Positions 21,758-37,550 of a stretch of 64,000 bases of DNA are shown piece after piece. The notes under the pieces are model-generated. The model searched no databases. It was given only the letters and a program-made list of their open reading frames with translations, and was not told the origin of the DNA. Where the stretch lies: positions 62,001 to 126,000 of the IMG/VR virus record IMGVR_UViG_3300043418_000072; one strand, given 5' to 3'. Both the position numbers and the translations under genes were made by a program. Position 1 is the stretch's first letter; each line of letters begins with the position of its first letter.

Positions 21758-21911
21758 AAACCGCTCTTAGCTCTGCATTGACTCGAGCAATAGCTTCGGG
21801 GCTGTTCTGCGCTTGCCACTCTGCGCTACGTTCCAGTCCTTGACCTTCCATAACGCAGGGGCAATGTGCTTCACCACATTGTGGTCCTAAACATGCACAT
21901 GGATTGGTCAT
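21714..21911 (-). CDS. Small Cys-rich hypothetical protein
   Basis: CACLGPQCGEAHCPC. Confidence 0.55.
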   Translation of the reverse strand: MTNPCACLGPQCGEAHCPCVMEGQGLERSAEWQAQNSPEAIARVNAELRAVFDEIFERRNERNTH

Positions 21912-22780
21912 GCTAGGCTCGCATATAAGTGCATTTGCAGGTTGAGTTTGAACCCATGCTCAATGCAATAGTGTGCAGCGTATTCATGGTTGGCCTGGTT
22001 GGCCTTCAAGTCTAACAAGCCCGGTTCCCAGAAGCTGATAACTTCATCAACTGTGCTGCGTTCAGCCATTGTGATGTTGCCTTTTTCTGCACGAAGCAAT
22101 TTGATCTTCTGTGGGAAACTGTTGTACACGTTCATTGGGCTGCAATAGATCTCTTTGCCTGTTGCTACTTTCCAGTCATGTGCCCACTGCGGTACGCTGT
22201 TATACGGACTGTCTGCATCTGCACTCATAACAAACTTCAAACAGTCTGCACGTTGCAAGATAGTTGCCGACGGCGCAAAGTATTTGGTAGCTTTACCATC
22301 TTTCTCGGCACACTTAGGGCTACACACTAGCGTTACACCAACAGGAACATCAGTAACAGGAATGCCGTTACTTTCGACTTGAACTGCCTTGAAATGTGCA
22401 AGTTGACGTGCCATAAATGCACTAATGTTCTCCTGCAGGAGCGGTTCGCCGCCAGTCATTACTAACACAACACCGGGATAGTTATTTAAACCATTGTTTG
22501 CCCATGTTGGTGTTGCTTTACCTTGCTTGTTCCAATAGTCGTTGATAGCTGCATACATTTTGCCTTCGATTTGATCGTAAGTCATCCAATCGCCGTCATC
22601 AAAAAATGTATCACAAAAACTGCATACTAGATTACATTTAGCCAATCGAATAAACAATGCGGGCATACCTGCATAAGGGCCTTCGCCTTGCAGTGTAAAG
22701 AACATGCTAGTTACAAACAAGCTGTCTGCCGGAGCATCCTTAAAATACTTCTTACCAATAATTTCATTTGTTCCAAACAT
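21908..22780 (-). CDS. queE: 7-carboxy-7-deazaguanine synthase (radical SAM)
   Basis: F.TLQGEG...G.PA.FIRL..CNL.CSFCDT, TGGEPLLQ, ESNG, SPK and Q.H motifs. Confidence 0.9.
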   Translation of the reverse strand: MFGTNEIIGKKYFKDAPADSLFVTSMFFTLQGEGPYAGMPALFIRLAKCNLVCSFCDTFFDDGDWMTYDQIEGKMYAAINDYWNKQGKATPTWANNGLNNYPGVVLVMTGGEPLLQENISAFMARQLAHFKAVQVESNGIPVTDVPVGVTLVCSPKCAEKDGKATKYFAPSATILQRADCLKFVMSADADSPYNSVPQWAHDWKVATGKEIYCSPMNVYNSFPQKIKLLRAEKGNITMAERSTVDEVISFWEPGLLDLKANQANHEYAAHYCIEHGFKLNLQMHLYASLA

Positions 22781-22781
22781 A

Positions 22782-23000
22782 TTATTTCATCAATCCTTGT
22801 GCTAGTGTTTTTAGTTCTTCGTCTGTCATTAGAAAATTGTATGTGCTAGTGAAGTCAACTTCTCCGTCGCGCATACATTCTTGAATAATCTCTAAGCTAT
22901 TTAGGTCAGTGGGACTAGTGCATTTCCACATACGCACTCGCATACGGAACGCAGTTTCGTCCTTAACTGTAAATTCTTTTACTTCGATGTTGGGGTGCAT
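22782..23000 (-). CDS. Hypothetical protein
   Basis: Operon-packed ORF. Confidence 0.6.
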   Translation of the reverse strand: MHPNIEVKEFTVKDETAFRMRVRMWKCTSPTDLNSLEIIQECMRDGEVDFTSTYNFLMTDEELKTLAQGLMK

Positions 23001-23272
23001 GAGTCGTCCTTAAAAATATTTGACCAGTGGTGTAGCTTTTCTCGCTTGGCAAGGATAGCAGCTTGTACGCTAGCAGCGTCAATCACTCCGCGCTCGTTTA
23101 GCAGTTCAATCATGCAAAGCACATCACCTATCTCTGTTTCTAGATTCTCTCGCTGTGTCTTACCAGACTTGTGAGAGTTATCTAGGCCAAATCGACGGGC
23201 TTTACTAACTGCTTGGATTACTTCTGCACATTCTTCTTGCAGGATGTCCATAATTTCTTGTTGTTTATTCAT
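22979..23272 (-). CDS. MazG-like nucleotide pyrophosphohydrolase
   Basis: LQEECAEVIQA...LETEIGDVL (EExxE...ExxD). Confidence 0.8.
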   Translation of the reverse strand: MNKQQEIMDILQEECAEVIQAVSKARRFGLDNSHKSGKTQRENLETEIGDVLCMIELLNERGVIDAASVQAAILAKREKLHHWSNIFKDDSCTPTSK

Positions 23273-24113
23273 CTTTAATCTTGTTATCCCTTACCCATTT
23301 GCCAAAGTGTACGCAATGGTCTTCGTATCGGTTCATGGCTTTCATTAATGGAAAGTAATTGCCTTTTTGTAATTCAGCAGTAGCAACATCTTCTTTGAAC
23401 ACTGTTTCTAGTGTCTCAAAGATAAACCGTCTGTCGGCACTTGCATTGCTATTGTAATAGAATTGTGTGATCCAGTCAAACCCGTATTCGCTCTTAATGT
23501 CATGTGGAATAACAGTATTAACCATAACCATTCCGTCACGCCCGTATTCAACAAACGTAAACGGGAAAATATACAACCACCAACCAGTAGGATGTGTTTG
23601 CAAGATCCAGCCATCACCTTGGTCCATCTGGATGTCACCTAAGTCCACTTGCTTTGACAAGAATGGATGGATACCATTTTGATGTACGTGCAACAGGTCT
23701 GCTTCTGCGTCCATTAACCAAAGCCAGCTACCCTTGCTCGTACCCTTGCAACTGTGGCTATATTCCAGCGCATCTTCAGCAGCTAGGTCTTGTACCCATG
23801 AATGATCGGGTTCCACAAAGTCCTTGAACACTAACCCACTACGCCCAACTTGTGCAGTTCCGCAGGTTAGTTTCTTGGGATTGTTTAATGGTGTACCGTC
23901 TACTGCCCATTTAAAGTCATGAAACTTACAATAGACTTCTTGTACTACTTCTCCGGGTGAGTGCATTGGGTACATGCGATGCGGACAAAATCTATGAAAC
24001 AAATTAGCAACTGTGTCTGTGCCTTGATTGAGAATAACTTCGGGCGTAACAAAGTTGCCTGCGCTCATCGCAGACTTATGCGCATAGATTTTTGGTATAT
24101 TTTTAAACATCAT
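23265..24113 (-). CDS. Rieske [2Fe-2S] non-heme iron oxygenase (copy 1)
   Basis: CPHR...CKFH Rieske ligands, DLLHV....IH and EDV mononuclear iron ligands. Start moved to MMFKN. Confidence 0.75.
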   Translation of the reverse strand: MMFKNIPKIYAHKSAMSAGNFVTPEVILNQGTDTVANLFHRFCPHRMYPMHSPGEVVQEVYCKFHDFKWAVDGTPLNNPKKLTCGTAQVGRSGLVFKDFVEPDHSWVQDLAAEDALEYSHSCKGTSKGSWLWLMDAEADLLHVHQNGIHPFLSKQVDLGDIQMDQGDGWILQTHPTGWWLYIFPFTFVEYGRDGMVMVNTVIPHDIKSEYGFDWITQFYYNSNASADRRFIFETLETVFKEDVATAELQKGNYFPLMKAMNRYEDHCVHFGKWVRDNKIKDE

Positions 24114-24286
24114 TGATTCCAATGCTTTATCACGCCCGCTACAATAAAGCAGTTGGTTATGACGTAGCACATTACGATGGCAGTTCGAATGCAGGCAATA
24201 CGGTCTGCTTCTGCATCCGAGCTGCCTGCTTTTTCTCCTAGGGCCTTAGCCCATAGATGCCAAAATTTACGCAAATAGGTCTTCAT
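24110..24286 (-). CDS. Small phage membrane protein
   Basis: W.LWAKALGEKAG..D.EAD.IA.IRT plus one transmembrane segment. Start moved to MKTYLRK. Confidence 0.6.
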   Translation of the reverse strand: MKTYLRKFWHLWAKALGEKAGSSDAEADRIACIRTAIVMCYVITNCFIVAGVIKHWNQ

Positions 24287-24767
24287 TCCATTCACGGTGG
24301 CCGTCACGGTATGCCATGTTGCTTTGTGTTTCACGAACTTCCACGCGGTAACACCACAAACGAGCTGCTTCATGTGGGCCCCACATTTCTGGAATGTAAA
24401 CACCATTCACATACTTGTACAGCATGTCACTTAGTGCTTCGCATCCTAGTGCAGGCAACACAACAATCTTGGCCATGCCCTTCTCTTGTAGCAGTTTGAA
24501 TGTCTCCATTTCTGGATCATCTTGTGCAACGATAAGAGTGTGGTCAAATTGATCTTCGAGTGTCTTCTTTAGTTCTTTAAGTCCACCGTAATCAGCGGCC
24601 CAGTTACGAACGTCTAGGTCATTAGTTCCAAAATAGAACTTCATGCTAAATGCGTAGCCGTGAATCTTATTGCAGTGCGAGTCAGCACGCCATTGTCTGT
24701 ATGCAACAGGAAATGCGTTATGGTACTCTTTAGTACTTGTATATTTGTATTGAACGGGTGTCGTCAT
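24267..24767 (-). CDS. queD: 6-carboxytetrahydropterin synthase
   Basis: HC.KIHGY, DYG.LK....DQFDH and VEVRET motifs. Confidence 0.88.
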   Translation of the reverse strand: MTTPVQYKYTSTKEYHNAFPVAYRQWRADSHCNKIHGYAFSMKFYFGTNDLDVRNWAADYGGLKELKKTLEDQFDHTLIVAQDDPEMETFKLLQEKGMAKIVVLPALGCEALSDMLYKYVNGVYIPEMWGPHEAARLWCYRVEVRETQSNMAYRDGHREWNEDLFA

Positions 24768-24769
24768 GC

Positions 24770-24840
24770 TTATTCTCCTATGTTAAATTTTAGCATAGGC
24801 AGCAGAATTTGTATAGCGGGATGATGCTCTAAAGGCCGCT
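24770..24840 (-). promoter_or_regulatory. Candidate preQ1-I-like pseudoknot/riboswitch and RBS-sequestering hairpin upstream of queD
   Basis: P1 AGCGG/CCGCT, loop AGCA pairing with tail TGCT, A-rich linker; a CCTATG/CATAGG hairpin covers part of AGGAG. Confidence 0.45.
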
Positions 24841-25677
24841 GAACTTATTGAGTAGTGTATCTCTATTTATAAAGAACGCTTGGTGCTCTGGGTTTTTACC
24901 TAACTTACTCAAACTCTTTTTAATAATAAATTCAAGTTCGGGCAATTGGTAAAAGTTGAAAAAGGATGATTGTATTTTTGATCTGCAGAGAATACCATAC
25001 AAGTCAGCTTTTGCTATTTGGGTGTTCTTAGTTGTGTCAAGCTCCCTAACCAGTGCAGCAAATAATTCGGGAGTGTATGAGAAAAATGCACCGGGATGCT
25101 TAGATCCGTGTACCACATCTAAAAAATAATCGTGGTCAGTTAACTCAACTAGGTCGCCAATGGGTTCGTAAAAAGTAGATGAAACATGAACCGGATCGCC
25201 GTACCCTGTTAATACACAGGCGTTGGGCAGTAAGTCTGCAACAATGTTTACAATCAAAGAACGGTCAAATGGCAAACAATGTTTATGGGCATGTGCAATA
25301 AGCATTTTAACTAATTCAGTATGCTTTTCTTTCCCGCTAAAATCTAATACTAGCGGGGTTAGGTTATTATCTTGGCAGAATTTATAAGCATACCAATTCT
25401 CTGATTCAACATAGTCAGCAGCCACTATCACCGGAGTGAACGCGATACTGTTTCTAACTAACACTTTAGCCACAAACTCGCTATCAAGGCCGCCACTTAA
25501 ACACAGGTGCAGGTTGGCGTACTTGTCTGCAACCAACTGTGCAGTATAATCAGCAGCATCATCAAATGACATTACCGCCGGGGTCGCAGTTGTTTCAAAT
25601 GCAAACGGTGATGTTATATTCCCGGGGCTATTATTTTCTAAGTTAATAGATGCCCACTCATTGTGTCCAATTTTCAT
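24829..25677 (-). CDS. PP-loop (SGGxDS) adenine nucleotide alpha-hydrolase-like protein 1
   Basis: LSGGLDSE motif; C-terminal HPGAFFSYTPEL. Confidence 0.7.
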   Translation of the reverse strand: MKIGHNEWASINLENNSPGNITSPFAFETTATPAVMSFDDAADYTAQLVADKYANLHLCLSGGLDSEFVAKVLVRNSIAFTPVIVAADYVESENWYAYKFCQDNNLTPLVLDFSGKEKHTELVKMLIAHAHKHCLPFDRSLIVNIVADLLPNACVLTGYGDPVHVSSTFYEPIGDLVELTDHDYFLDVVHGSKHPGAFFSYTPELFAALVRELDTTKNTQIAKADLYGILCRSKIQSSFFNFYQLPELEFIIKKSLSKLGKNPEHQAFFINRDTLLNKFSGL

Positions 25678-26528
25678 CTCAACAGTAACTTAATCAATTG
25701 GTCTTTGTGCCACGTGAGTGCAGGGAAGAAACTATACATACCTACGCCTGCAAATTCCGCTAACTGTTTCCTAACTGCTAACGAAATTGGTAGTGTTGGA
25801 TTCGTGTCCTTGGGTTTGTACGGAAGACTATACAATTCAGCCTTGCCTGCAGATTCGCTTACGTTGACATTAAGCGACTTTGCTATTGCAAGGAACAGCT
25901 CTGGTGTATATTGGAAAAATGCGCCAGGATGTACGCCGGGCTGCATAAACTCGGTAATAAACGAAAACCACTCAATGTCGAATATCTCCCCAGCTGGCTG
26001 ATAGTAGTCATCAGTGTGAGCCCCGATTGGACTATCGCCCACTAACAGTTGGCCGCCTTTGTTGCTAACGTATTCAGCTAAGTAGGATACTATGTTAGTT
26101 AGCCCCGACACTTGCTTCAGGTCTTTTGCAATTAATCTAAACTGGCGTACCAGCCTTGGATCATTCTCAATAAAGGTGAGTATAACTGGTTCTATGTTGT
26201 GTAGTTTGCACCAATGTAATGCGCAATGAGTTTCAACGTTGTCTGGCGTTATTGCAATTATTGGAGTAAACGAGATACCGTTTCGGAATAATACTTCAGC
26301 AACATAGTCACTATCAAGGCCTCCGCTCATTGCTAAGTAGAGATTGCTACATCGATCATTAATTAACTTAGCAGTATAATCGGCGGCCTCATGGAATGTT
26401 AATGTATCGATGACCTCTGTGTGATTAAAGCTCATACTAACTGTTGACAACCTAGGGTGCTCGACTGCTATTAATGTAACTGAATACCAGTTACTGTGTC
26501 CAGCATTGATCGTTACTGAGTGCGACAT
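25674..26528 (-). CDS. PP-loop (SGGxDS) protein 2
   Basis: MSGGLDSD and HPGAFFQYTPEL. Confidence 0.7.
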   Translation of the reverse strand: MSHSVTINAGHSNWYSVTLIAVEHPRLSTVSMSFNHTEVIDTLTFHEAADYTAKLINDRCSNLYLAMSGGLDSDYVAEVLFRNGISFTPIIAITPDNVETHCALHWCKLHNIEPVILTFIENDPRLVRQFRLIAKDLKQVSGLTNIVSYLAEYVSNKGGQLLVGDSPIGAHTDDYYQPAGEIFDIEWFSFITEFMQPGVHPGAFFQYTPELFLAIAKSLNVNVSESAGKAELYSLPYKPKDTNPTLPISLAVRKQLAEFAGVGMYSFFPALTWHKDQLIKLLLR

Positions 26529-27406
26529 AGTATTTTTAAAAATTCTTCTCTATCAGGGCATGGAGCAAAATCTCTGGCACCCCAATTCAATGGTACATGT
26601 GCGTGTGCCCATTTAAACAAATCGTTATACTCGGGGATAGTCTTGGCTATATAGTTATGAGTAAAGAACTCGCACCCGGTTAGCTTAGGACGAGGCAGCA
26701 AATCAAACAGACGCCATTTGTTATCCTCAACAGGCTGAGAAGTGTCCCAATGATAAATTACGCTTGCAAGCATTTCCGGAGACCAATAAAAGAAAGCCCA
26801 CGGGTGCTTGTTTGGGTTTACTATCTCTATATAGAAATCGCTCTCGTCAAACATAAACCCACGAAAAGTTTCCGCAAATTCACGATCTGCTTTAACAAGT
26901 CGCAATTTTGGATCAGGGTAATATGATGGTAATGCGCCAGTTACTAAGTATCCACCTAGACGTTCAACTTCATTGGCTACTAAGTTAACAGTTGCGCCGA
27001 ACCAACTGATACCTTTAATTCTTCCTACTGTGCGCTTACCGTAATCTATAAATTCAAACGGGTCTACTTCAAACTTAATAAGTTCAACATCATTTTCAGC
27101 ACACCACTTATCGGCGTACCATTCGCCAATCATGAGATAACCTTTACAAGTCATCATAATGGCTTTGAACGGGACTCCAGCAGCTTTAAAGCTCTTTGCT
27201 ACATATTCGCTATCGCAACCACCACTAAGTGCAACGTAGATATTTGGGTACATTGCATAGATTTCCTTGGCAGTTGAAATAGCTATTTCTTCCAGTGGCA
27301 GTATCTTATCTGCTTGCTCTGTGAATTGTACAGTTAAATCCTCATCACGAATACGGCGAGGATTTCCGCCAAACGAATAAGTGAGCCAGTTGTTTCTACA
27401 GTACAT
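26513..27406 (-). CDS. PP-loop (SGGxDS) protein 3
   Basis: LSGGCDSE and HPWAFFYWSPEM. Confidence 0.7.
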   Translation of the reverse strand: MYCRNNWLTYSFGGNPRRIRDEDLTVQFTEQADKILPLEEIAISTAKEIYAMYPNIYVALSGGCDSEYVAKSFKAAGVPFKAIMMTCKGYLMIGEWYADKWCAENDVELIKFEVDPFEFIDYGKRTVGRIKGISWFGATVNLVANEVERLGGYLVTGALPSYYPDPKLRLVKADREFAETFRGFMFDESDFYIEIVNPNKHPWAFFYWSPEMLASVIYHWDTSQPVEDNKWRLFDLLPRPKLTGCEFFTHNYIAKTIPEYNDLFKWAHAHVPLNWGARDFAPCPDREEFLKILCRTQ

Positions 27407-28227
27407 TAGGTGTTTGCTTTATACCAATCATAGAAGTGCTTGATGTCTACTTCTAGTGGGTCGAGAGTTTTTGATGGTGTTCTGTATTTATTGTTTAGCG
27501 ATAGCCGATTAACTGCATCTACGTCTTCGTCAAATGTGACTTCTGCTACCTTAATAAAGTTTTCTCGCACATGCTGCGGAGTAGACTCATTAAACAAGTA
27601 ATGGATGTATACTTCATACCCATAGTCGGTTTGTACCATTTCGCTAAAGTACAAGCATCCTGGTTCCCACTCGATATGAGTGAATGGGTAAATGAATAGC
27701 CACCATCCGTGTTCATGGTGCTGACAAACCCAATCACTACCGTATTCAGTTTGCAACTTGTGTATGTCTACGTAACTAGTTAGCAATGGGTGAATCTTGT
27801 CAACGTGTAGCAGATCCACGTGCATTTCCATTTGCCACTTCCAGTCACCGGTTCCTGTTCTGCGTGTACTGTGACTATAGGTAAACGAATCGTTAGCCAA
27901 GTCATTGACCCATTTTGCGTCAGAGGGTTCCTGCCAGTCCATAAACATCAGCCCACTTTTGCCAACTGTAAGATTACGGGGCTTTAAACATGCCGAGTTA
28001 TTAGTAGGCGTTCCGTCATCGTTCCATTGCCAGCCATGTAGCTCGCAACGCATATTATCTGCAACGCCAGCTGGCTGCAAAATAGGAAATCCGCGATGCG
28101 GACAGATGTTAGTAAATGCTTCGAACTGTTGGTTAATAACAAACTTGTTAGATGCAAAAAACTTATTATCTTTTAAACTATCCTTGTGCCCAAAAAGTCT
28201 TGGCACCGGTCCTTTAAACAAATCCAT
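27406..28227 (-). CDS. Rieske [2Fe-2S] non-heme iron oxygenase (copy 2)
   Basis: NICPHRG...CELHGW, DLLHVDKIH and EDV motifs. Confidence 0.8.
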   Translation of the reverse strand: MDLFKGPVPRLFGHKDSLKDNKFFASNKFVINQQFEAFTNICPHRGFPILQPAGVADNMRCELHGWQWNDDGTPTNNSACLKPRNLTVGKSGLMFMDWQEPSDAKWVNDLANDSFTYSHSTRRTGTGDWKWQMEMHVDLLHVDKIHPLLTSYVDIHKLQTEYGSDWVCQHHEHGWWLFIYPFTHIEWEPGCLYFSEMVQTDYGYEVYIHYLFNESTPQHVRENFIKVAEVTFDEDVDAVNRLSLNNKYRTPSKTLDPLEVDIKHFYDWYKANT

Positions 28228-28552: not shown

Positions 28553-28896
28553 TGTTTAAGTATCCGTTCGTTAATGATCATGTCCATGATAGACTCAATT
28601 CTACAATTCTGTATTAGGTGCCCGTATACTATGCTAAACATCAGGATAGTGTCTTCGTCTGGAAAGAATACTCTAGTACCTGTATTGCCACCGGCGCGGT
28701 TGCTATAACTAGGCTTGCACCCAGGGAACTGCACTAGATAGGATACAGTGCCCCACGACGTTGTGCTACTCGGGATAACTGCTCCACGAGCACGTAGGTA
28801 CTCAGCTGCCTCTTCTGTAAGCTCAAACAAGTCTACAGGATAGGATCCGTTCATTATTGTGATCTGCTTGCTAGATATTTTTGCCATTGTATCCAT
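28549..28896 (-). CDS. Hypothetical protein, tandem paralogue of 28214..28552
   Basis: RVFFPDEDTILMFSIVY. Confidence 0.55.
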   Translation of the reverse strand: MDTMAKISSKQITIMNGSYPVDLFELTEEAAEYLRARGAVIPSSTTSWGTVSYLVQFPGCKPSYSNRAGGNTGTRVFFPDEDTILMFSIVYGHLIQNCRIESIMDMIINERILKQ

Positions 28897-29312
28897 GTGC
28901 CTTTACTAAGGAATCCCCATTCGCGACGCTTACGACCTGGCATAAACAGTGTCCAACATTCAATACTGGGATCAAGCTCAATGCGATGATAGCTATTGGC
29001 TTTTGCACTACGGAATGATCCAGCACCACGCCATGTTGCAATCTCGCCAATCTTGTGACCCTTGCTGTTAAACTGAGGTTGCCATTCCCAGTACCCGCCC
29101 TTTAAGATAAGAGTTCGGTAATTCCAAGGATGATCATGCACGTCATCGGGATCTGACTTAAGAAACTTGTGCAGAAAAATGTTAAAGGGGAAATTCTCAC
29201 GGTCTTTAAGAAATACATAGTAACGCTCTAAATAGGGTTCGTTGTTTACACGGTCCATAACAATACGTTTGCGACCGTGTGCTTCAAGCCAGTTGAGAAT
29301 CCACTGCTTCAT
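28854..29312 (-). CDS. Cupin-fold protein (HDHPW family)
   Basis: FLH.F..SD....HDHPW..GGYWE..HRIEL..WTLF motifs. Start moved to MKQWIL. Confidence 0.7.
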   Translation of the reverse strand: MKQWILNWLEAHGRKRIVMDRVNNEPYLERYYVFLKDRENFPFNIFLHKFLKSDPDDVHDHPWNYRTLILKGGYWEWQPQFNSKGHKIGEIATWRGAGSFRSAKANSYHRIELDPSIECWTLFMPGRKRREWGFLSKGTWIQWQKYLASRSQ

Positions 29313-29320
29313 AGTTGGCT

Positions 29321-29536
29321 TTACTTGCAGGTGTCTAAAAATTGATCTAAACGCATACACGCTTCGTCAAAGTCTACGCCCCAGACATGTGCGTAAATAA
29401 TACCATCTTTAATTTGCATATCAAATGGTACCATACCGTTAAATCTAAAGTCACTAGGCATTTCAGTTGTGACCATAAACTCGTTTAATACCTTTGCACG
29501 ATTGATCAGTGCTGTTGTCATGTCTGCGGCGTTCAT
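29321..29536 (-). CDS. Hypothetical protein
   Basis: AAGGA RBS; operon-packed. Confidence 0.6.
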   Translation of the reverse strand: MNAADMTTALINRAKVLNEFMVTTEMPSDFRFNGMVPFDMQIKDGIIYAHVWGVDFDEACMRLDQFLDTCK

Positions 29537-29545: not shown

Positions 29546-30247
29546 TTAGCGTGGTGCAAACTCTTGTTGCAATTTGATGTTGTCAAAGAACTCTTTCTTT
29601 ACGCTTGCGTCTTCTTTAAAGGCTCCGCGTAGTACTGTGGTCTGAGTAAGGCTAGAGTGAGCCATGATACCACGATTCTCACAACACCCGTGGGTAGCTT
29701 GAATATAAACTGCAACGTCCTGTGATCCAGTTGCAAGTTCAATCTCACGAGCGATGTCCATACACAGTTCTTCTTGTAGTGTTCCACGTCTTGCGCACCA
29801 CTGCGCAATCCTGGTATACTTCGATAATCCGATGAGTTTCTGTCCAGCAATAATACCAATGTAAGCCACACCTGTAACAGGTTGGTGATGATGGCTACAC
29901 ATGCTCTTAAGCTCACTGCGCACAACCAACATTCCGTCGTATGCGCCATCGCTATCATTGGGAAACGCAGTTGCGCTAGGGCTCGCATCGTACCGCCCAG
30001 CCATAATTTCGTTGTAGTACATTTTTGCAAGACGCCTTGCTGTGCCTTTTGAGTTCGGATCATTTTCACGGTCAATCAATAGTGTGTCAAGTACTTTTTC
30101 AAATGCTTCTGCTGCTTCGCTAATCAATGATTCTTTTTCTTCTTCGCCAACATACTCACTAATGTTGTCGCCTGCCCAAAAGCGTTTATTGTCTGCTCGC
30201 ATCTTGTCGCGAATAACTTGTGATAAGTTTTTACTTGTATCTGTCAT
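29546..30247 (-). CDS. folE: GTP cyclohydrolase I
   Basis: SMCSHH, GLSK..R, LQE, H.C...RG and T....G.F motifs. Confidence 0.95.
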   Translation of the reverse strand: MTDTSKNLSQVIRDKMRADNKRFWAGDNISEYVGEEEKESLISEAAEAFEKVLDTLLIDRENDPNSKGTARRLAKMYYNEIMAGRYDASPSATAFPNDSDGAYDGMLVVRSELKSMCSHHHQPVTGVAYIGIIAGQKLIGLSKYTRIAQWCARRGTLQEELCMDIAREIELATGSQDVAVYIQATHGCCENRGIMAHSSLTQTTVLRGAFKEDASVKKEFFDNIKLQQEFAPR

Positions 30248-30248
30248 T

Positions 30249-30845
30249 TTAGTCCTTGATAGTGATTGTTCTTAGGTCTGGGTACTCAACGGTTACTGGT
30301 TTGGGTTTATTAACCTTAACTCCTTCAAGCAATGCAAGTCCTTGTACTGCTTCTTCAGGTGTAGGCTTATAATGATACCCAACTCTAAACTCTTTCTGAG
30401 ATTCCCATGGTTTAATATTTAGGTCGCGTCCATCATAGCGCATTAAAATTAACGCATCATAGGCCGCCTTGTCATCTAGTAGTATAGCACCTCCGCGACC
30501 AATATGTAAAGGCTTTGTGTGCCCAAAACTCAAACATTGAATTTGCCCCGGATGATACATGTTTTCTTCCAATCGTCTAGCACTATCCCAGATTCTAGTT
30601 TTTCGAAACTTGTATTCGCCTACCCATTGTGCAGGTGACCCAACTTCGTAGTAATATTGAATATTGAGTTTGTGCATCAACATCGGAATACTCAAGTATG
30701 TAAATGGGGTAAATGCGCAAAACTCTACCTTGTCATATCTCATACAAAGTTCAATTGCATGTGTGCAGCAATCGGTCATGATTGCATAGGGTGCGCCGGT
30801 AAATTCTGCTAACGCAATTTCAAATTTCTTAATTTTATCAAACAC
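30249..30845 (-). CDS. Short DegT-like PLP-dependent aminotransferase
   Basis: FE..LA...GA.YA, WDSA and LSFGHTKP...GRGGAIL motifs; only about 200 aa. Probable GTG start at 30845. Confidence 0.7.
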   Translation of the reverse strand: MFDKIKKFEIALAEFTGAPYAIMTDCCTHAIELCMRYDKVEFCAFTPFTYLSIPMLMHKLNIQYYYEVGSPAQWVGEYKFRKTRIWDSARRLEENMYHPGQIQCLSFGHTKPLHIGRGGAILLDDKAAYDALILMRYDGRDLNIKPWESQKEFRVGYHYKPTPEEAVQGLALLEGVKVNKPKPVTVEYPDLRTITIKD

Positions 30846-31821
30846 GATTCTTGTACCAGTTATATGCTGTGTCAATGATGTTTTTTATACTGCTGTTAAT
30901 TGGATACCATCCCAATACTGAGTTAGCCACAGATGGATCTGCTACTAACAGGTCTGGATCACCCTGTCTACGTGGACCATACTTGACTGTAGTTAATCCG
31001 TATGTTTCGTAAACGTAGTCAACGATTTCTTTGTTACTGTACCCGCTACCGGTACCTAAGTTAAACACATGATGGCCAGCAATAGTGTCTGGGCCATAAT
31101 GGATAGCAAAGAACTCTGCTGCCTTAGTGTGTGCCACAGCAATATCCCAAACGTGTACGTAGTCGCGAACGCAGGTACCATCTAATGTGTCAAAGTCGTC
31201 GCCATTGATAGTAACTAATCTGCCGCTTAGGCTTGCTTCAATTGCTCGTGCAACTAGATGTGTTGCATCGGGCTCTTGCCCTAAGTCACCAGTTACTGCC
31301 GCGCCAGCAGCATTAAAATATCTAAAGCAAATGGTGTTAAATCCATATGCGGAACCGTAATCCTTTAGCACTTGTTCAACGATCATTTTAGTTGAACCGT
31401 AAGGGCTAATTGGCTGTAAGGGGCTGTTTATTGTTATTGGTGATTCTTTGGGAACCCCATATACGCTGGCGCTACTACTAAACATAATAGTAGGCCGCTT
31501 TGGTAAATCCTTTAACACATCCAGCATCTTAATAGTCTTACTAACGTTGTTATCGTAATACTCTGCTGGATTTGTCATGCTTGGGCCAACTAGACTAGTG
31601 CCTGCACAATGCACAATAATGTCTGGTTGCAGCATGATGTACATGCTGAGTGCAGCTTTGCTAGCAAAGCAATTGATCAAATGACCGTCAATGTCCTTGA
31701 CAGTGTGTTCACGGTAAACAGTGTCAACAATGTGTACAGTGTAGCCTTCTTGTTTGAAAGCTCGAGCAACGTGACTACCAATGTACCCACATCCGCCAGT
31801 GACAATAACGGTCTTTGACAT
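30838..31821 (-). CDS. galE: UDP-glucose 4-epimerase-like protein
   Basis: TGGCGYIGSH, SSSASVYG, YGSTK, RYFNAAGA and DGTCVRDYVHV motifs. Confidence 0.9.
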   Translation of the reverse strand: MSKTVIVTGGCGYIGSHVARAFKQEGYTVHIVDTVYREHTVKDIDGHLINCFASKAALSMYIMLQPDIIVHCAGTSLVGPSMTNPAEYYDNNVSKTIKMLDVLKDLPKRPTIMFSSSASVYGVPKESPITINSPLQPISPYGSTKMIVEQVLKDYGSAYGFNTICFRYFNAAGAAVTGDLGQEPDATHLVARAIEASLSGRLVTINGDDFDTLDGTCVRDYVHVWDIAVAHTKAAEFFAIHYGPDTIAGHHVFNLGTGSGYSNKEIVDYVYETYGLTTVKYGPRRQGDPDLLVADPSVANSVLGWYPINSSIKNIIDTAYNWYKNRV

Positions 31822-32693: not shown

Positions 32694-32695
32694 TA

Positions 32696-32881
32696 TTAAA
32701 TTCCTTTGAGAGTTTTTAGCATTATGTATTGTTCAAATACTTCAACTATCTCGGGATCTCCCCCGAGATAGTATTCACTAGCAGCCCTCATGCTTAACGC
32801 TAAAGCAGCCGCTTCTGATAATGTAGGCCAACGTGCTTGACAGCACTCGACCCAAATTTCTTGTTTAGTATTTAGACTCAT
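32696..32881 (-). CDS. Hypothetical protein (start moved to MSLNTK)
   Basis: Fills the gap after the glycosyltransferase gene. Confidence 0.5.
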   Translation of the reverse strand: MSLNTKQEIWVECCQARWPTLSEAAALALSMRAASEYYLGGDPEIVEVFEQYIMLKTLKGI

Positions 32882-34043
32882 GTGTATGCTTGCGATAGTC
32901 AGTCGACATACGCAACCACTGTTCGCCTTTGCCTTCAATAATGTCAACAATGCGATCAGCAGTACCGCTAGTCCATGCGCTAATCTTGCCCATGTTTTCG
33001 CTTGGCTTTTGTAGCAACTTCTCTAGCTTGTCTAATGCGTCATCAATGCTCCACGGTACATACATACGAGTATGATCATTTCCAAAAGTTTCAGGGAAAG
33101 AGCGATATGCAGGATACAGTACATTACATCCCAACGCGTCAGCTTCGGAGACAGTGTTGGAGACCCAATCTTGTAAAGCACAATTAAATACAACACGAGA
33201 GTTATTAACAATGTCATAGTACTGATTCTTTTCTAGGTCTTCGTAAATGGTTAACAATCCTGCAGTCTGCATGCCACGTGTACGTTCCATGTAGCTATCG
33301 TTATTGCTTTTAAGAACAGCACCCGAGCAAACAGCAAACTCTACTCCCGAACCAGGATGACGTTCGTGCCATGCTTTGATAACATCCATGTAAAAATCTG
33401 GTTGCTTTTCTTGGTCCCAACGTGCAGAGAATACCACGCGATGCTTACGCTCATTCCATGGAGTAATCTTATTGCCCACACGCTCTTGAACTTCTTCGGT
33501 GTTAAACACCAATCCTGAAATATTGTAGATTGGTGATTTCCAACCTGCAATCTTCATGTGCATTACCATTTCTTCATTAGTGGCCAACACGCCATCGACA
33601 AAGCTGTCCACCATGCGTTCATAGTGACCCATAAATTCACCCATTCCCCAAACATGTACGAAATCGTCAGGGTCAATAGACTGAGCGAGACAACGAACAA
33701 AGATTCTTGGGCGCGAAGCCTCTGGGATTTGTTTAAGGATGTAGGGTAGGCTTTCAATCCCTGGTTGGAACATGTCTTCGAAATATACAACATCATCTTT
33801 AGTTACTGCTCCTTGTTGCATCAACCGAACCAAATTCATAATCTGGCTCATACCAAAGTAGCTGCGACCGTGTGCGTCCAGTACTTGTCCTGTAACAATC
33901 TTTTGACTGTTATCTAGTGTTAGGCCCGGAACATACACTGCTTCAACACCGCGACGATCAAACACACGTTTGTTCCATTCTGTAAGTTGTAGGGTATAGC
34001 GAGCTTTGTAACTCTCTAGTCCCATGTAATATAGCTTGCCCAT
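32865..34043 (-). CDS. GT-B (family 4-like) glycosyltransferase
   Basis: FSARWDQEKQP, then QD.VSNTVSEA...GC..L.P...SFPE, typical of the GT-B C-terminal domain. Confidence 0.8.
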   Translation of the reverse strand: MGKLYYMGLESYKARYTLQLTEWNKRVFDRRGVEAVYVPGLTLDNSQKIVTGQVLDAHGRSYFGMSQIMNLVRLMQQGAVTKDDVVYFEDMFQPGIESLPYILKQIPEASRPRIFVRCLAQSIDPDDFVHVWGMGEFMGHYERMVDSFVDGVLATNEEMVMHMKIAGWKSPIYNISGLVFNTEEVQERVGNKITPWNERKHRVVFSARWDQEKQPDFYMDVIKAWHERHPGSGVEFAVCSGAVLKSNNDSYMERTRGMQTAGLLTIYEDLEKNQYYDIVNNSRVVFNCALQDWVSNTVSEADALGCNVLYPAYRSFPETFGNDHTRMYVPWSIDDALDKLEKLLQKPSENMGKISAWTSGTADRIVDIIEGKGEQWLRMSTDYRKHTHESKY

Positions 34044-34450: not shown

Positions 34451-34452
34451 AA

Positions 34453-34716: not shown

Positions 34717-34727
34717 TTTATATTTCC

Positions 34728-35177
34728 TTAGATACTAATCAGTTGTGGGCGGTGAGATTCATATTTAATTAAAGCGCCGTTCTCACCATCTTCGGCAACT
34801 TCAATCCAGACACTGCGGTCAGGATACTTTGTGTTGATTTGTGTGTACAAATCATCTGCAATCATTTCGCAACTCTTAAAGTTGAGCTCTAGCGTACCGC
34901 CTGCATACAAGTTTTCGAGCCAACGTTTAAATTGGATAAACTCAATGTCGCGGTCGTTGTGAAACACGTCAATCCATACACGGAAGTGAAAGATATGACG
35001 ATGTGGTAGGCCGAGGAACGAAACGTCGTACTCGTCGCCTGTTGCTAGTGCTGGATCAGTTGCTGCTGCTGGGTATTTGTGAATGCCTTCTTTCTTGAAG
35101 GTTACCCAAATTTGTCGGTCTGCACGTTGCATGATACGCTCACGCTTATCTGCTAGTGCTTGGTCTCGTTGGCTCAT
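34728..35177 (-). CDS. QueD-like T-fold protein with LxxxHRHxF motif (DpdL-like CDG decarboxylase candidate)
   Basis: EGIH.YP, FLGLPHRHIFHF, DRDIEFI, SCEMIA and EDGENG motifs; lacks the QueD CxxxHGH/Y motif. Confidence 0.65.
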   Translation of the reverse strand: MSQRDQALADKRERIMQRADRQIWVTFKKEGIHKYPAAATDPALATGDEYDVSFLGLPHRHIFHFRVWIDVFHNDRDIEFIQFKRWLENLYAGGTLELNFKSCEMIADDLYTQINTKYPDRSVWIEVAEDGENGALIKYESHRPQLISI

Positions 35178-35359
35178 CTAATAATTCCTTGTGAGTCGGT
35201 TGTGGTATGTAAGTCAATGACTTCGTTTGCTACGTCTGAATAGTGAGTAGTACATGCAGTTTGCATTTCGTCCCACATAGCTTCAAAATCGCTATCTGAA
35301 ATGTCTGGGCGCATTTCTGCAATCACAAGACGTAACTGCTCTTTACGGAGGTTGTTCAT
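35174..35359 (-). CDS. Hypothetical protein (start moved to MNNLRK)
   Basis: ATGA overlap with the upstream stop. Confidence 0.5.
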   Translation of the reverse strand: MNNLRKEQLRLVIAEMRPDISDSDFEAMWDEMQTACTTHYSDVANEVIDLHTTTDSQGIIR

Positions 35360-35859
35360 AAAGTTTCGTCTTTCGTATAGCTGGACCAATCAGTAAATAC
35401 TTTTCGATCCATAAGGTTGTGAACACTGTGGCACCAAACACCTGGGTTAGTTGCTGCAAAGTCTTTGTCGTCTAGCTTAATTGTAGCATTATAACCTAGC
35501 TGTTGTAAATACGGCAGTTTCACCGAAATCATCGGAATAAAGTTATGATGTTCGCATAGACATCCTTCTAGTAGGCCTTCAACACATTTAGCATCAATGT
35601 CTAGCGTACAAGTATATCCTTTTTCCAAAAACGGACGAATCATGTTTTCCCAATCGTTCCAAACCGGATCGTTAATTGCAGGATTCGGAAAGCTCATATT
35701 GGCACCAAAGTAGATATGGTCCGCACCGTGTAGGTTAAGTGCAATATCTGCCAATGGCTGTATGCCCACTACAAACAGGGTTTGTTTTCCAAATGCGGGA
35801 GTATGTTCTACTTCCTTGCCTTGGAAGAACTTGACTTCTTCGTGGCCTTCTCTGATCAT
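35356..35859 (-). CDS. Hypothetical protein coupled to the TGT-like gene
   Basis: G.EVEHTPA.G..TLFV, HIYFGAN and KLDD.DF.ATNPGVW motifs; ATGA-coupled. Confidence 0.7.
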   Translation of the reverse strand: MIREGHEEVKFFQGKEVEHTPAFGKQTLFVVGIQPLADIALNLHGADHIYFGANMSFPNPAINDPVWNDWENMIRPFLEKGYTCTLDIDAKCVEGLLEGCLCEHHNFIPMISVKLPYLQQLGYNATIKLDDKDFAATNPGVWCHSVHNLMDRKVFTDWSSYTKDETL

Positions 35860-37550
35860 TGTGTGTCCTCTAAGTTGTCTAATGCTGTTTCGTCAAATTC
35901 AGTGTCGTCGTCGCTGCTTGGATCTTCTACAATAAACAGCTTGCCAAACATTGGTCGAGCACTTACTGCCTTCTTGCCCTTAAATCCGCGAGTACCAATA
36001 ATCTCAGTCCAGTAACCATTTGGGCCACCGTACATTTCGATAATCTCTTCTGCTGTTTCGCGATCAGGTGCTGCAAAAATAGCTTCAACAATGTCTTCAA
36101 AGAAAGGCGCAAGCGGCTTTTCTGATCGCATCATTGCTGGATGCTCACCTGCATCAAATCGTCTATTAGCTTCTTGTACCGCAGTCAAGTGCATCCATAC
36201 GTTATGTCCCATAAGCAATGCGTAACTAAAACTATCCCATGATGTTTTGCCCTCCTTGCTAATCTTATTTAGATCGCCGGGTTTATAGATGCAAATATCT
36301 TTCATTTTAAACAAGTCACTTAGTGGACTGTCTTCCCAGTTATCGTAGATACCATCTGCAACTACACCGGCACTCCACTTACGTGTATCGGTTGCGTACT
36401 TCTTATCATCTGCGCTCGGCGCCATACGATAAGACCATTTACCATCCTGTGGGAATACATTTTCAAAATATACTTGTCCATTAGCAGTGGCCAGAAACGG
36501 GCTTGCACAGTCGAAGCTAATAGTAAACGCAGGATTAACATACTTACGAATTGCACGTTGGATGACTGTGAGCAATACTGCCCATTCTAGTTTACTTGTG
36601 CCCAAGAAGTGCATCCAATCATGTTTGCCCTCTTGTAGTAAGTTGTCGTAACGTAGGGCCACTAGGCGTTTTAAGATCAAGTGTACGTCACACATGTTCT
36701 GACCTCCCATTGCCCAGCCATCAAAGTGCGTATCGGGATACTTAACAGGATCGCAATACTCTTTCATTACTTGATACCAATCTTCTGCGCTGTCATGATT
36801 GTCACCCTGGAGCACGTTTAAGAACTTAGTACCGCCGTTGTTCTTACCTTTACGCTGCGCCATAAAGTATTCGTTGTTATACTTTGTGGCCGCTACTGCT
36901 TCGTTGAGGGTTTTGATACCGCAGGCATCGCTGGCCTTCTTGTCATGGATAACCCAAGTTGGAATATCTAATCCCATACCGTAGTTACTGATACTATCTA
37001 GCCAGGTTAGAATCGCACTGCGCTTCTTTTGTGCTGCATCAATTAAATTTTGATAGTTTTTAGCATGATCAATAGTAACAGTCTTAGGGCCTTTTTTACC
37101 AATAACTGGCTTACCAGCTTTGTCTAACACCGGCTTAACTTCTACACCTAGTGCTACCATTGCAGCCATTTTGTCTTTGACTTCTTGGCTGTTAGGATCA
37201 CGCCATTCGCCTTCCCACAAGCCTTTGGCAATCTGGAATCCACCCGAGTCACCTAGCAGGATAGTGTTTGGGTCACGTTTGCGAACCATGTCCTCACTTG
37301 GGTCTTCTTTAGTGAGATCTAAGTTAGCATGTCCACCTGAATAGAGACTCCACTTATACGGGAACAAGCCCTTTTGATCGTTAAGCCAGTTCATCTGCTC
37401 CATGTCAGTTAGTCCTTGCGGGAAACGTGCTGGATCAACATAGTCGTTGTTAACACGCTGTTTGCCCACAAACGTACCGTAGAAGCCGCTAATAGCTGGC
37501 AAGAATACTGCGTAATCTTTTTGTTTGCTTGTTAAATTATCTTGGCTCAT
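35856..37550 (-). CDS. tRNA-guanine transglycosylase-fold protein (DpdA-like deazaguanine transferase)
   Basis: GDSGGFQI, LDIP, NVLQG, AMGG, HFLG and SFDCASP match the TGT catalytic motifs in order. No C-terminal Zn-binding CxCxxC. Sits in a folE/queD/queE context. Confidence 0.75.
   Translation of the reverse strand: MSQDNLTSKQKDYAVFLPAISGFYGTFVGKQRVNNDYVDPARFPQGLTDMEQMNWLNDQKGLFPYKWSLYSGGHANLDLTKEDPSEDMVRKRDPNTILLGDSGGFQIAKGLWEGEWRDPNSQEVKDKMAAMVALGVEVKPVLDKAGKPVIGKKGPKTVTIDHAKNYQNLIDAAQKKRSAILTWLDSISNYGMGLDIPTWVIHDKKASDACGIKTLNEAVAATKYNNEYFMAQRKGKNNGGTKFLNVLQGDNHDSAEDWYQVMKEYCDPVKYPDTHFDGWAMGGQNMCDVHLILKRLVALRYDNLLQEGKHDWMHFLGTSKLEWAVLLTVIQRAIRKYVNPAFTISFDCASPFLATANGQVYFENVFPQDGKWSYRMAPSADDKKYATDTRKWSAGVVADGIYDNWEDSPLSDLFKMKDICIYKPGDLNKISKEGKTSWDSFSYALLMGHNVWMHLTAVQEANRRFDAGEHPAMMRSEKPLAPFFEDIVEAIFAAPDRETAEEIIEMYGGPNGYWTEIIGTRGFKGKKAVSARPMFGKLFIVEDPSSDDDTEFDETALDNLEDTQ

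Follow-up and report, generated by a model that had tools for sequence, protein, structure and literature searches.

In phage 7-deazaguanine pathways, FolE, QueD and QueE convert GTP into 7-carboxy-7-deazaguanine (CDG), and the QueD paralogue DpdL, recognized by the motif LxxxHRHxF, has been proposed to act as a CDG decarboxylase giving 7-deazaguanine, although this activity has never been shown biochemically (PMC10516641). Phage phiST, which has DpdL, DpdA3, FolE, QueD, QueE and MazG, carries dDG by mass spectrometry, but DpdA plus DpdL of phiST and ACP17 gave no dDG in E. coli, and the authors suggested that other enzymes may be needed (PMC10516641). The DpdA3-type phages reach 100% replacement, and the authors who defined these systems conclude that all known cases are post-replicative. 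In PA5oct, the DNA resists cleavage at G-containing restriction sites and is attacked by nucleases that sense modified G (PMC12191111).

We analyzed a window of 64 kb from the genome of about 354 kb of an uncultivated jumbo phage from the environment, in which a gene cluster of the DpdL type lies just downstream of the replicative family-B DNA polymerase. The cluster, at 21908-37550, is entirely on the minus strand, and with its flanking gene it includes the following features:

21908..22780 (-), QueE-like radical SAM CDG synthase, 290 aa
22979..23272 (-), MazG-like nucleoside triphosphate pyrophosphohydrolase, 97 aa
23265..24170 (-), Rieske [2Fe-2S] protein A, 301 aa, accessory and lineage-specific
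24267..24767 (-), QueD-like 6-carboxytetrahydropterin synthase, 166 aa
24829..27406 (-), three tandem paralogous PP-loop ATP pyrophosphatases (24829-25677, 25674-26528 and 26513-27406; 282, 284 and 297 aa)
27406..28227 (-), Rieske non-haem iron oxygenase alpha-subunit-like protein B, 273 aa, accessory
28854..29360 (-), cupin protein, 168 aa, accessory
29546..30247 (-), GTP cyclohydrolase I (FolE), 233 aa
30249..30875 (-), short DegT/DnrJ/EryC1-like protein, 208 aa
30838..31821 (-), UDP-glucose 4-epimerase (GalE), 327 aa
32865..34043 (-), GT-B (GT4-like, from the predicted fold) glycosyltransferase, 392 aa
34453..34716 (-), conserved small protein of unknown function, 87 aa
34728..35177 (-), DpdL homologue (QueD paralogue, proposed CDG decarboxylase), 149 aa
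35356..35859 (-), conserved protein of unknown function between dpdA and dpdL, 167 aa
35856..37550 (-), large DpdA-superfamily transglycosylase with a predicted TGT fold, 564 aa, without the Zn cysteine triad
37537..38163 (-), variable protein, weakly sulfotransferase-like, 208 aa

An earlier note, made from the sequence alone, had described this region as a 7-deazaguanine cluster with a DpdL-like protein, a large TGT-like protein and sugar enzymes, and this observation is confirmed, as every gene that it listed is present at the position given. It had however overlooked six genes in the middle of the cluster, namely the three PP-loop proteins, the two Rieske oxygenases and the cupin. Its interpretation is only partly supported: the assignment to a DpdL-type phage 7-deazaguanine cluster with a TGT/DpdA-superfamily enzyme holds, and so does its account of the DpdL motif and proposed role, whereas its absence of queC holds by HMM only, its linkage of GalE and the short aminotransferase-like protein is restricted to this clade, and its proposals for the nature of the base (dDG, dCDG or a glycoside), for DNA rather than tRNA as the target, and for MazG biasing the nucleotide pool against dGTP remain untested.

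The genes for CDG synthesis are readily identified. QueE matches phrog_2076 at 7.8e-47 and several NCBIfam QueE models at 7e-20 to 3e-16, all below their equivalog cut-offs, and carries the CxxxCxxC radical-SAM motif as CNLVCSFC. QueD matches PF01242 at 2.5e-15 and phrog_2389 at 1.5e-35, and has a CNKIHGY motif that aligns with the QueD proteins of phiST and ACP17. FolE matches PF01227 at 4.9e-40 and NCBIfam FolE models at 2e-40, again below their equivalog cut-offs. No canonical QueC, QueF or Gat-QueC was detected by HMM, though only the 64 kb window was examined and a queC elsewhere in the genome is not excluded. MazG matches PF03819 at 2.4e-8, above cut-off; it is a common companion of such clusters, as in phiST, and we assign it no role.

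The DpdL homologue carries the motif LGLPHRHIFHF and matches phrog_17812 at 5.7e-37. By tblastn and alignment it reaches the founding members of the family in phiST (gp040, 37% identity) and ACP17 (58%), and tblastn also gives 66% in Phosso and 58% in PA5oct.

The 564-aa protein has no Pfam, PHROG or NCBIfam hit, and gives no significant sequence-HMM match to TGT. However, its AF2 model is confident (pLDDT 89.9), and the only PDB hits at E<=1e-3 are bacterial TGT (4.8e-6) and archaeosine TGT (5.1e-4), although TM-scores to solved TGTs are low (0.27-0.39) because of large insertions. Hits in BFVD include phage proteins annotated as TGT and an uncharacterised Vibrio phage nt-1 protein. Comparison by hhalign gives a probability of 96.3% (1.5e-9) against the 424-aa DSGG protein of ACP17, and 82.6% over 83 columns against phiST DpdA3. 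In an alignment of 52 relatives, D101 (of the DSGG motif), S102, G104 and D347 are invariant and D195 is conserved in 51, while CxCxxC is found in 0 of 52. Its PA5oct homologue (32% identity) sits in the same DpdA-GT-DpdL-QueE arrangement.

These data bear on two alternatives. The first is that the TGT-like protein modifies host or phage tRNA, or that FolE, the T-fold proteins and the glycosyltransferase make a glycosylated pterin, DNA not being the target. TGT enzymes are tRNA enzymes in cells, and FolE plus a PTPS-type T-fold enzyme plus a glycosyltransferase is the logic of cyanobacterial pterin glycoside synthesis, a possibility that we did not test. We consider this very unlikely, since QueE commits the pathway to 7-deazapurines, the module sits among replication genes next to PolB in all relatives, PA5oct with the homologous module has restriction-resistant DNA that points to modified G, and phiST has dDG in its DNA. 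The second is that the deazapurine enters DNA before replication through the nucleotide pool, a phosphoribosyltransferase and kinases making the deaza-dGTP analogue, MazG depleting dGTP, and the TGT-like protein having another role. In favour of this are the presence of MazG, a xanthine-guanine phosphoribosyltransferase gene next to queE in BUCT-ZZ01, a Pribosyltran gene at the edge of one related locus (L007), and the complete replacement in DpdA3-type phages. This also appears unlikely, because no phosphoribosyltransferase was found in the cluster of the window, known cases are concluded to be post-replicative, and a DpdA-superfamily gene is present in every related locus that reaches its position (74 hits, 73 loci).

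The glycosyltransferase has only weak Pfam GT1 hits, but its AF2 model (pLDDT 76.7) has a GT-B fold, and Foldseek against PDB gives MshA, BshA, PimB' and SenB at about 1e-10 with TM about 0.6, among 288 hits at E<=1e-3. Whether this family co-occurs with dpdA/dpdL across phages was the test that the earlier note had set for its own reading, and the outcome is strongly positive. Among related IMG/VR loci the glycosyltransferase was found in 71 where 69 reach its expected position, and it lies next to DpdL in all 69. Homologues also lie beside DpdL in PA5oct-like phages (3e-11 to that of PA5oct), ACP17, Phosso, X1/BUDD, BCSR5 and BUCT-ZZ01 (64% identity). In the phage database, 18 of 28 DpdL-bearing records carry this family and 18 of 23 records with this family carry DpdL, always within about 3 kb, where about 0.01 shared records would be expected by chance; the only five records with this family away from dpdL/dpdA are partial matches that begin at residue 83. 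When the search was seeded with the glycosyltransferase alone, 10 of 10 full-length loci carried DpdL or a DpdA-like gene beside it. Moreover, gene order differs between lineages, being DpdA-GT-DpdL in PA5oct and ACP17, GT-DpdA-DpdL in X1, and DpdL-GT in Phosso and BUCT-ZZ01. Our literature searches found no report of this link, which is present in at least seven phage lineages and points to an undescribed sugar-bearing DNA base.

The other sugar-related genes have a narrower distribution. GalE passes its equivalog cut-off (TIGR01179 at 1.5e-86, 290 bits against a cut-off of 262) and is present in 49 of 57 related loci. The short DegT-like protein matches PF01041 at 6.1e-14 in two stretches, and its SFGHTK...GRGG sequence keeps the position of the PLP lysine; its short length (192-202 aa) is conserved in relatives, and it is present in 40 of 54 loci. 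Both are conserved only within this clade, and are absent from the PA5oct, ACP17 and Phosso clusters.

Taken together, the reading that we favour, with a confidence only somewhat better than even, is a phage 7-deazaguanine DNA-modification module of the DpdL type whose base is probably glycosylated. In this view, FolE, QueD and QueE would make CDG, as follows from established pathway knowledge and from the gene identities shown here, and DpdL would remove the carboxyl group, a step that rests on the published proposal alone. The 564-aa protein would then exchange guanine in phage DNA for the deazapurine, its predicted fold and catalytic motifs being shown by our analysis and its substrate inferred, and the glycosyltransferase would add a hexose to the deazaguanine, either in DNA or on the free base before insertion; here the genetic linkage is what we show, while the chemistry is inferred and was not measured. 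Neither a glycosylated deazaguanine nor a suitable acceptor atom is known, as 7-deazaguanine has no hydroxyl and the sugar would need a C-, N- or acyl-glycosidic bond. In this clade GalE, and perhaps the short DegT-like protein, would supply or tailor the UDP-sugar.

Alternatively, the DNA may carry plain dDG (or dCDG) only, with the glycosyltransferase, GalE and the short DegT serving another target, such as another base, a phage or host protein, or a host surface glycan, and being linked to dpdL for regulatory or historical reasons. We regard this as possible but less likely. phiST makes plain dDG with DpdL and no such glycosyltransferase, so the enzyme is not needed for dDG, the base lacks an ordinary hydroxyl acceptor, and ten of the 28 DpdL-bearing phage records lack this family. 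A second, full-length DegT plus SDR pair lies elsewhere in the window, so sugar metabolism in this phage is not confined to the cluster. Against this alternative, the linkage persists through rearranged gene orders, was recovered from the glycosyltransferase alone, and the family is almost never found away from dpdL/dpdA.

Concerning the genes that had been overlooked, the three PP-loop paralogues lie between queD and folE and each carry SGGxDSE, with S61, G62, G63, D65 and S66 invariant in their alignment. A profile search against PDB gives NH3-dependent NAD synthetase at 0.0035, then TtuA, GMP synthase and TilS, and the nearest Atlas clusters are viral and partly carry QueC or Asn_synthase. 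Rieske protein A matches PF00355 at 1.3e-5, above cut-off, with a CPH...CKFH motif, and is found in 1 of the 80 related loci. Rieske protein B matches PF00355 at 2.8e-9, with CPH...CELH and E-x3-D-x2-H-x4-H motifs, and its Atlas neighbours carry Rieske and Ring_hydroxyl_A. The cupin matches phrog_4786 'cysteine dioxygenase' at 8e-41 and is present in 5 of 51 related loci.

These genes form a lineage-specific accessory block that could change the end product in this lineage, for example by forming an amide at the CDG carboxyl, or they may be unrelated cargo. A further alternative is that the PP-loop paralogues act like QueC*, a proposed ADG synthase (PMC10516641), or like the asparagine-synthetase-like CmoY, which amidates a carboxylated base in DNA (PMC12783734), adenylating the CDG carboxyl on the free base or in DNA and ligating ammonia or other amines, while the Rieske oxygenases and cupin add further oxidative tailoring; the final base would then be an amide-type or hydroxylated deazaguanine rather than, or besides, dDG. 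We hold this to be doubtful. The nearest relatives of the PP-loop proteins are among carboxyl-amidating enzymes (NAD synthetase, and QueC or Asn_synthase in Atlas clusters), all eight related loci with such a gene have it directly upstream of queD, three times with a Rieske gene in front (a Rieske gene precedes the PP-loop gene in related loci L026 and L092, for instance), and the X1 cluster also holds a PP-loop (PAPS-reductase family) gene after folE. However, there is no QueC HMM hit, hhalign against E. coli QueC gives only 6% probability, the alignment has no conserved Zn cysteines, and no match was found in cultured phages. The block is present in only about 10% of related loci, and the folE-queD gap is an insertion hot spot that in relatives also holds plainly unrelated cargo (peptidases, FG-GAP proteins, GH113), so that position alone does not tie the PP-loop/Rieske genes to the pathway. 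The presence of DpdL also argues for decarboxylation.

Finally, three further proteins are encoded here. The 87-aa protein is present in 62 of 77 related loci at the same position and has no family hit. The 167-aa protein is present in 60 of 74 related loci, also without a family hit, the only lead being a weak Atlas match to Endonuclease_NS, and no homologue was found among the PA5oct, ACP17 and Phosso cluster proteins compared. The variable 208-aa protein matches PF03567 at 7e-4, below cut-off, and is present in 10 of 71 related loci.

All genes between 18 and 43 kb of the window lie on the minus strand. In the direction of transcription, and with families assigned from Pfam, PHROGs and NCBIfam, the order is as follows:

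39883-42552 (minus), family-B DNA polymerase
38944-39879 (minus), class-I methyltransferase
then (minus), a conserved 244-aa protein
then (minus), a variable 208-aa protein with a weak sulfotransferase hit
35856-37550 (minus), the 564-aa protein
then (minus), a conserved 167-aa protein
34728-35177 (minus), DpdL
then (minus), an 87-aa and a 135-aa protein
32865-34043 (minus), the glycosyltransferase
then (minus), three small or acidic ORFs
30838-31821 (minus), GalE
30249-30875 (minus), the short DegT-like protein
29546-30247 (minus), FolE
then (minus), a block of a cupin, two small ORFs, Rieske B, three PP-loop paralogues (24829-27406), QueD (24267-24767), Rieske A and MazG
21908-22780 (minus), QueE

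The observation made in the earlier note holds, as each item that it named is present. However, it overlooked three tandem PP-loop paralogues, two Rieske proteins and a cupin within the same interval. Its interpretation is partly supported. In particular, its statement on DpdL is correct: DpdL is defined as a QueD paralogue whose CxxxHGH motif is replaced by LxxxHRHxF, is found in phages with DpdA, FolE, QueD and QueE but no QueC, and is proposed, not shown, to decarboxylate CDG (PMC10516641). The window protein is a QueD-like T-fold protein that reads LGLPHRHIFHF, and by tblastn it reaches the two DpdL genes used in that paper, phiST gp040 (37%) and ACP17 (58%), as well as PA5oct-like phages, Phosso and others. 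It aligns with the DpdL of phiST, ACP17, Phosso and PA5oct, and more distantly with QueD. It also has the expected company, since DpdA, FolE, QueD and QueE are all present in the window and no QueC HMM hit was found there, although the search for queC did not extend to the rest of the genome of about 354 kb. Decarboxylation of CDG to 7-deazaguanine was not assayed here, and has not been shown in the literature either.

The 564-aa protein is not seen by sequence models: there is no hit at E<=0.01 in Pfam (including the TGT model PF01702) or NCBIfam, or at E<=0.001 in PHROGs. Single-sequence and profile searches against PDB sequences were not significant, with the family profile reaching TGT only at E=1.4, and BLASTP against phiST DpdA3 and the ACP17 424-aa DSGG protein was not significant, so that profile and fold methods were needed. 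It belongs to a very large family without annotation, for which we found more than 6,800 clusters at 90% identity, on contigs up to 329 kb, and 882 clusters at 50% identity. The AlphaFold model is confident (pLDDT 89.9, pTM 0.89) and has a TGT-type TIM-barrel fold. Its only PDB matches at E<=1e-3 are bacterial tRNA-guanine transglycosylase (5lpt_A) and archaeosine TGT (1iq8_A), both at probability 1.00, while the TM-score is only 0.27-0.39 because of insertions. Among predicted viral structures (BFVD), it matches phage proteins annotated as TGT or queuine tRNA-ribosyltransferase, and an uncharacterised protein of Vibrio phage nt-1.

In an alignment of 52 sequences, the catalytic aspartates occur in order (DSGG..., ...D-x-P..., ...FDC/S..P): D101, S102, G104, H314 and D347 are invariant, D195 is found in 51 of 52, and QG and HxLG are also conserved. 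The equivalence of the three aspartates to TGT D102, D156 and D280 is inferred from motif order and from partial HMM and hhalign alignments. The zinc site is lacking, as none of the 52 family members has CxCxxC and only the His of the HN motif (H449, N450) is kept. We therefore assign the protein to the TGT/DpdA superfamily by fold and catalytic motifs, as a large-format clade outside the reach of current HMMs. The earlier note had suggested placing it among the DpdA subfamilies as a check. Profile comparison by hhalign gives 96.3% probability against the ACP17 DSGG protein and 82.6%, over only 83 columns, against phiST DpdA3, which does not settle whether it belongs to any of DpdA1-4. Base exchange in DNA was not measured, and only context bears on it: the gene lies next to PolB, is conserved with FolE, QueD, QueE and DpdL, and has a homologue in PA5oct, a phage with G-modified DNA. 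The alternative that the cluster makes a pterin glycoside was rejected as the main explanation, because QueE and the DpdA-like gene are always present.

Concerning the phage itself, the polymerase is closest to those of Sinorhizobium phage Phosso (52%) and Agrobacterium phage Atu_ph07 (48%), then to GAP32/CBB-like jumbo phages at about 42%. An identical glycosyltransferase is recorded on a 354,098-bp contig, and a 320,767-bp IMG/VR contig (IMGVR_UViG_3300046092_000062) carries an identical DpdL. A nucleotide search of the whole cluster against cultured phages found no match.

The main new result is the genetic linkage of the glycosyltransferase. Whether it co-occurs with dpdA/dpdL across phages had been put forward in the earlier note as a test, and absence of linkage in relatives as grounds for rejection; the linkage was found. 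In 80 IMG/VR loci fetched through DpdL (68-100% identity), tblastn gave the counts listed here.

Occurrence of module genes in the 80 related loci (gene: loci with a hit; loci that reach the expected position)
564-aa protein: 74; 73
Glycosyltransferase: 71; 69
FolE: 58; 52
GalE: 49; 57
Short DegT: 40; 54

Outside the clade, the same glycosyltransferase family lies beside DpdL in Pseudomonas phage PA5oct (Wroclawvirus; pairwise 3e-11 to the window protein and 1e-83 to the Phosso one), Acidovorax phage ACP17, Phosso (where it is annotated as a glycosyltransferase), Xanthomonas phages X1 and BUDD, Burkholderia phage BCSR5, and the cyanophage BUCT-ZZ01 (Synechococcus; 64% identity to the window protein). 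In these phages the two genes occur with QueE and FolE, and the large DpdA-like protein is adjacent in all but Phosso, where it lies about 170 kb away. However, these genes are mostly annotated as hypothetical, the modification has not been identified chemically, and GalE, the short DegT and the PP-loop/Rieske block are lacking. The window's glycosyltransferase is a divergent subtype, with 20-25% identity to the PA5oct type. Within the window's own clade, two loci (L048 10764-11720 and L073 10671-11723) carry the PA5oct-type glycosyltransferase (23% identity to the window's) at the same position, and the two subtypes have evidently replaced each other.

Of 50,697 phage records, 28 have DpdL and 23 have this glycosyltransferase family. 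Eighteen have both, always within about 3 kb, and gene order differs between lineages. The five records with the family but no DpdL are partial matches that start at residue 83. In a reciprocal search of bacterial and archaeal genomes seeded with the glycosyltransferase alone, all ten full-length loci carry DpdL and/or a DpdA-like gene next to it. Most are evidently phage contigs binned into MAGs: contigs of up to 183 kb assigned to MAGs of Haliscomenobacter, Chitinophagales, Phycisphaerae, Rickettsiales MED657 and others (L096-L101, L103) carry the full PolB-DpdA-DpdL-GT-GalE-FolE module and look like jumbo-phage contigs, and two of them fall in one Haliscomenobacter MAG, which may hint at a host. 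One locus, in the isolate Pelagibacterium mangrovi WS-203 (NZ_JBAFXA010000002.1 192531-205391, locus 1036-7029), is a small island with a resolvase (serine recombinase), two unknown genes, a DpdA-like gene (424 aa, 26% identity to the window protein), an ORF with a weak hit to Vut_1/YhhQ, a deazapurine precursor transporter, and a glycosyltransferase of the Phosso type (50%). No DpdL was found there, and the island may represent a salvage-based cellular version of the same pair.

The model of the window glycosyltransferase (pLDDT 76.7), obtained from an alignment without three rows from annotated records, has a two-Rossmann-domain GT-B fold. Foldseek places it nearest to retaining GT4 enzymes, giving MshA, BshA, PimB', sucrose-phosphate synthase and SenB at about 1e-10 with TM about 0.6, and 288 hits at E<=1e-3. 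At the sequence level the evidence points both ways: PF13524 (2.7e-4) and PF00534 (3.8e-3) are both below cut-off, although some close homologues carry these families in precomputed hits, and the profile hits WlaC at 0.0017 over the R-x3-EK motif. R208, E212, K213, E300 and E318 are invariant, and the first four sit where GT4 enzymes bind the nucleotide sugar, but assigning them to donor binding is inference. GalE passes its equivalog cut-off (TIGR01179, 290.2 bits against 262.3). For the DegT-like protein, PF01041 matches at 6e-14, but in two pieces of a protein of only 208 aa with no C-terminal domain, against a full PLP fold of about 360 aa. The lysine position is kept and the short form is conserved in relatives, and we leave undecided whether it is a true sugar aminotransferase. 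A second sugar-nucleotide pair, a full-length DegT aminotransferase (369 aa) and an SDR epimerase/dehydratase (322 aa), lies at 1558-4994 (minus strand), directly upstream of thymidylate synthase and dihydrofolate reductase, and might feed the cluster's glycosyltransferase or serve another glycan.

Among the closest known systems is the dDG system of Cellulophaga phage phiST (Cui, Hutinet et al., NAR 2023, PMC10516641), which shares FolE, QueD, QueE, DpdL with the HRHxF motif and MazG, the lack of a canonical QueC, and a highly divergent transglycosylase missed by Pfam searches. However, the transglycosylase here has 564 aa against 259 aa and is only marginally similar to DpdA3, a GT4-like glycosyltransferase is part of the module here and absent in phiST, and GalE, the short DegT, and the PP-loop, Rieske and cupin genes are extra. 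phiST, which has DpdL and DpdA3 but no such glycosyltransferase, has dDG replacing G, while DpdA plus DpdL from phiST and from ACP17 gave no dDG in E. coli, and the authors note that other enzymes may be needed (PMC10516641). PA5oct DNA behaves as G-modified, but the base has not been identified (PMC12191111). The T4 alpha- and beta-glucosyltransferases, acting on 5-hydroxymethylcytosine DNA, offer a parallel for a phage GT-B enzyme that would decorate a non-canonical base after replication using a host UDP-sugar. They belong, however, to a different glycosyltransferase family, and the target base would here be a purine analogue with no hydroxymethyl handle. The main text of PMC10516641 does not contain the word stem 'glycosyl', and full-text literature searches found no report of a glycosylated deazaguanine.

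The PP-loop proteins form a small viral family (45 word-index hits), and neither they nor the Rieske proteins gave a tblastn match in cultured phages. The three paralogues carry SGGLDSE, SGGLDSD and SGGCDSE, and S61, G62, G63, D65 and S66 are invariant in their alignment. Their profile hits NH3-dependent NAD synthetase (0.0035), TtuA, GMP synthase and TilS, and neighbouring Atlas clusters partly carry QueC or Asn_synthase domains, PF06508 being present in only a minority of members. However, they fail every specific QueC test and are not classified as queC: there is no PF06508 or NCBIfam QueC hit, hhalign against E. coli QueC gives 6%, and the only invariant Cys is C102, with no conserved C-terminal Zn-binding cluster.

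In eight related loci a single copy (three copies in loci L004 and L009) lies directly upstream of queD, and three times a Rieske gene precedes it. The block is nevertheless present in only roughly one related locus in ten. Moreover, the folE-queD gap varies from 270 to 3,642 bp in 43 loci and elsewhere holds a subtilase, an S11 peptidase, FG-GAP proteins, GH113 and a kinase. It is thus an insertion hot spot, which weakens the idea that position between folE and queD proves a pathway role. The CmoA/CmoX/CmoY system of Synechococcus phage S-B43 (PMC12783734) and QueC* of Campylobacter phages, where a carboxyl group on a DNA base serves as a handle for an ATP-dependent amide ligase of the asparagine-synthetase or QueC kind, provide a possible model. 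CmoY in particular, an asparagine-synthetase-like ligase that amidates a carboxylated base in DNA, makes a tailoring role on the CDG carboxyl plausible, but we regard this role as unlikely. The link to CDG rests on position only, and no CmoA or CmoX was detected among the window proteins scanned. In the deazaguanine cluster of Xanthomonas phage X1 (L095 2927-3460), a PAPS-reductase-family PP-loop protein lies directly after folE, and a PP-loop enzyme of a different family thus occupies a position like that of the window's paralogues.

Taken together, our data directly establish the gene identities, the fold and motifs of the transglycosylase, the homology of DpdL, the GT-B fold and the genetic linkage, while the conversion of GTP to CDG by FolE, QueD and QueE and base exchange by DpdA-type enzymes are established knowledge. 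Decarboxylation by DpdL, DNA as the target, glycosylation of the deazapurine and UDP-galactose supply by GalE are inferences, and for the acceptor in particular only the linkage to dpdL/dpdA is informative, and no glycosyltransferase activity was assayed. We consider a deazaguanine DNA modification very likely and a sugar attached to it possible but at best an even matter, whereas the composite reading as a whole appears slightly more likely than not. The cluster belongs to a known kind, phage 7-deazaguanine DNA modification of the DpdL branch, and carries a conserved additional enzyme that we could not find described, and an unannotated large DpdA clade.

A bolder hypothesis, compatible with the data but in our view somewhat less likely than not, is that of a widespread but undescribed class of phage DNA hypermodification, in which 7-deazaguanine, or its 7-carboxy precursor, is inserted by a large Zn-less DpdA and then glycosylated by a dedicated GT4-like enzyme. 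As far as our searches showed, this would be the first sugar-bearing purine analogue in DNA. Because 7-deazaguanine has no hydroxyl, the sugar might be joined through a C-glycosidic bond at C7 or C8, and some lineages, including this one, would add a second layer through PP-loop amide ligases and Rieske oxygenases. Known 7-deazaguanine DNA bases number eight, none of them glycosylated, and all known sugar-bearing phage bases are hydroxymethyl-pyrimidines. A glycosyltransferase belonging to the dpdA-dpdL module would predict a new base chemistry in a very abundant group of environmental jumbo phages (at least 592 viral contigs with DpdL were found). The module also occurs in cultured phages, among them the well-studied P. 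aeruginosa jumbo phage PA5oct. It may also explain why DpdA plus DpdL alone gave no dDG in E. coli. Such a modification bears on phage resistance to restriction and CRISPR, on type IV and END-type defences, and on sequencing artefacts at G.

Other genes vary around the module. A xanthine-guanine phosphoribosyltransferase gene lies next to queE in BUCT-ZZ01 (L089 5093-5554), and a Pribosyltran gene lies near the module in a 329-kb relative (L007 21469-21695), which could mean a nucleotide-level route for the deazapurine. Relatives (L092 2489-3661 and 10681-12687; L091 8391-9665) carry other enzymes inside the module, namely a radical SAM protein between dpdL and the glycosyltransferase, a B12-binding radical SAM protein after queD, a HIT protein and FG-GAP proteins, suggesting lineage-to-lineage diversification around a fixed core. 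The 167-aa protein has no homologue among the PA5oct, ACP17 or Phosso cluster proteins compared and only a weak Endonuclease_NS lead, and is left without assigned function. Elsewhere, the window encodes a ClpB-like double AAA+ chaperone (763 aa) followed by a DnaJ homologue (281 aa) at 53917-57040, and, at 6569-10393, 45755-48109 and 62150-63109, a Bax1-I family membrane protein, a DUF2201 metallopeptidase/VWA protein with a MoxR-type AAA ATPase, a 784-aa HD_4 domain protein, and a TctC-like periplasmic receptor homologue.
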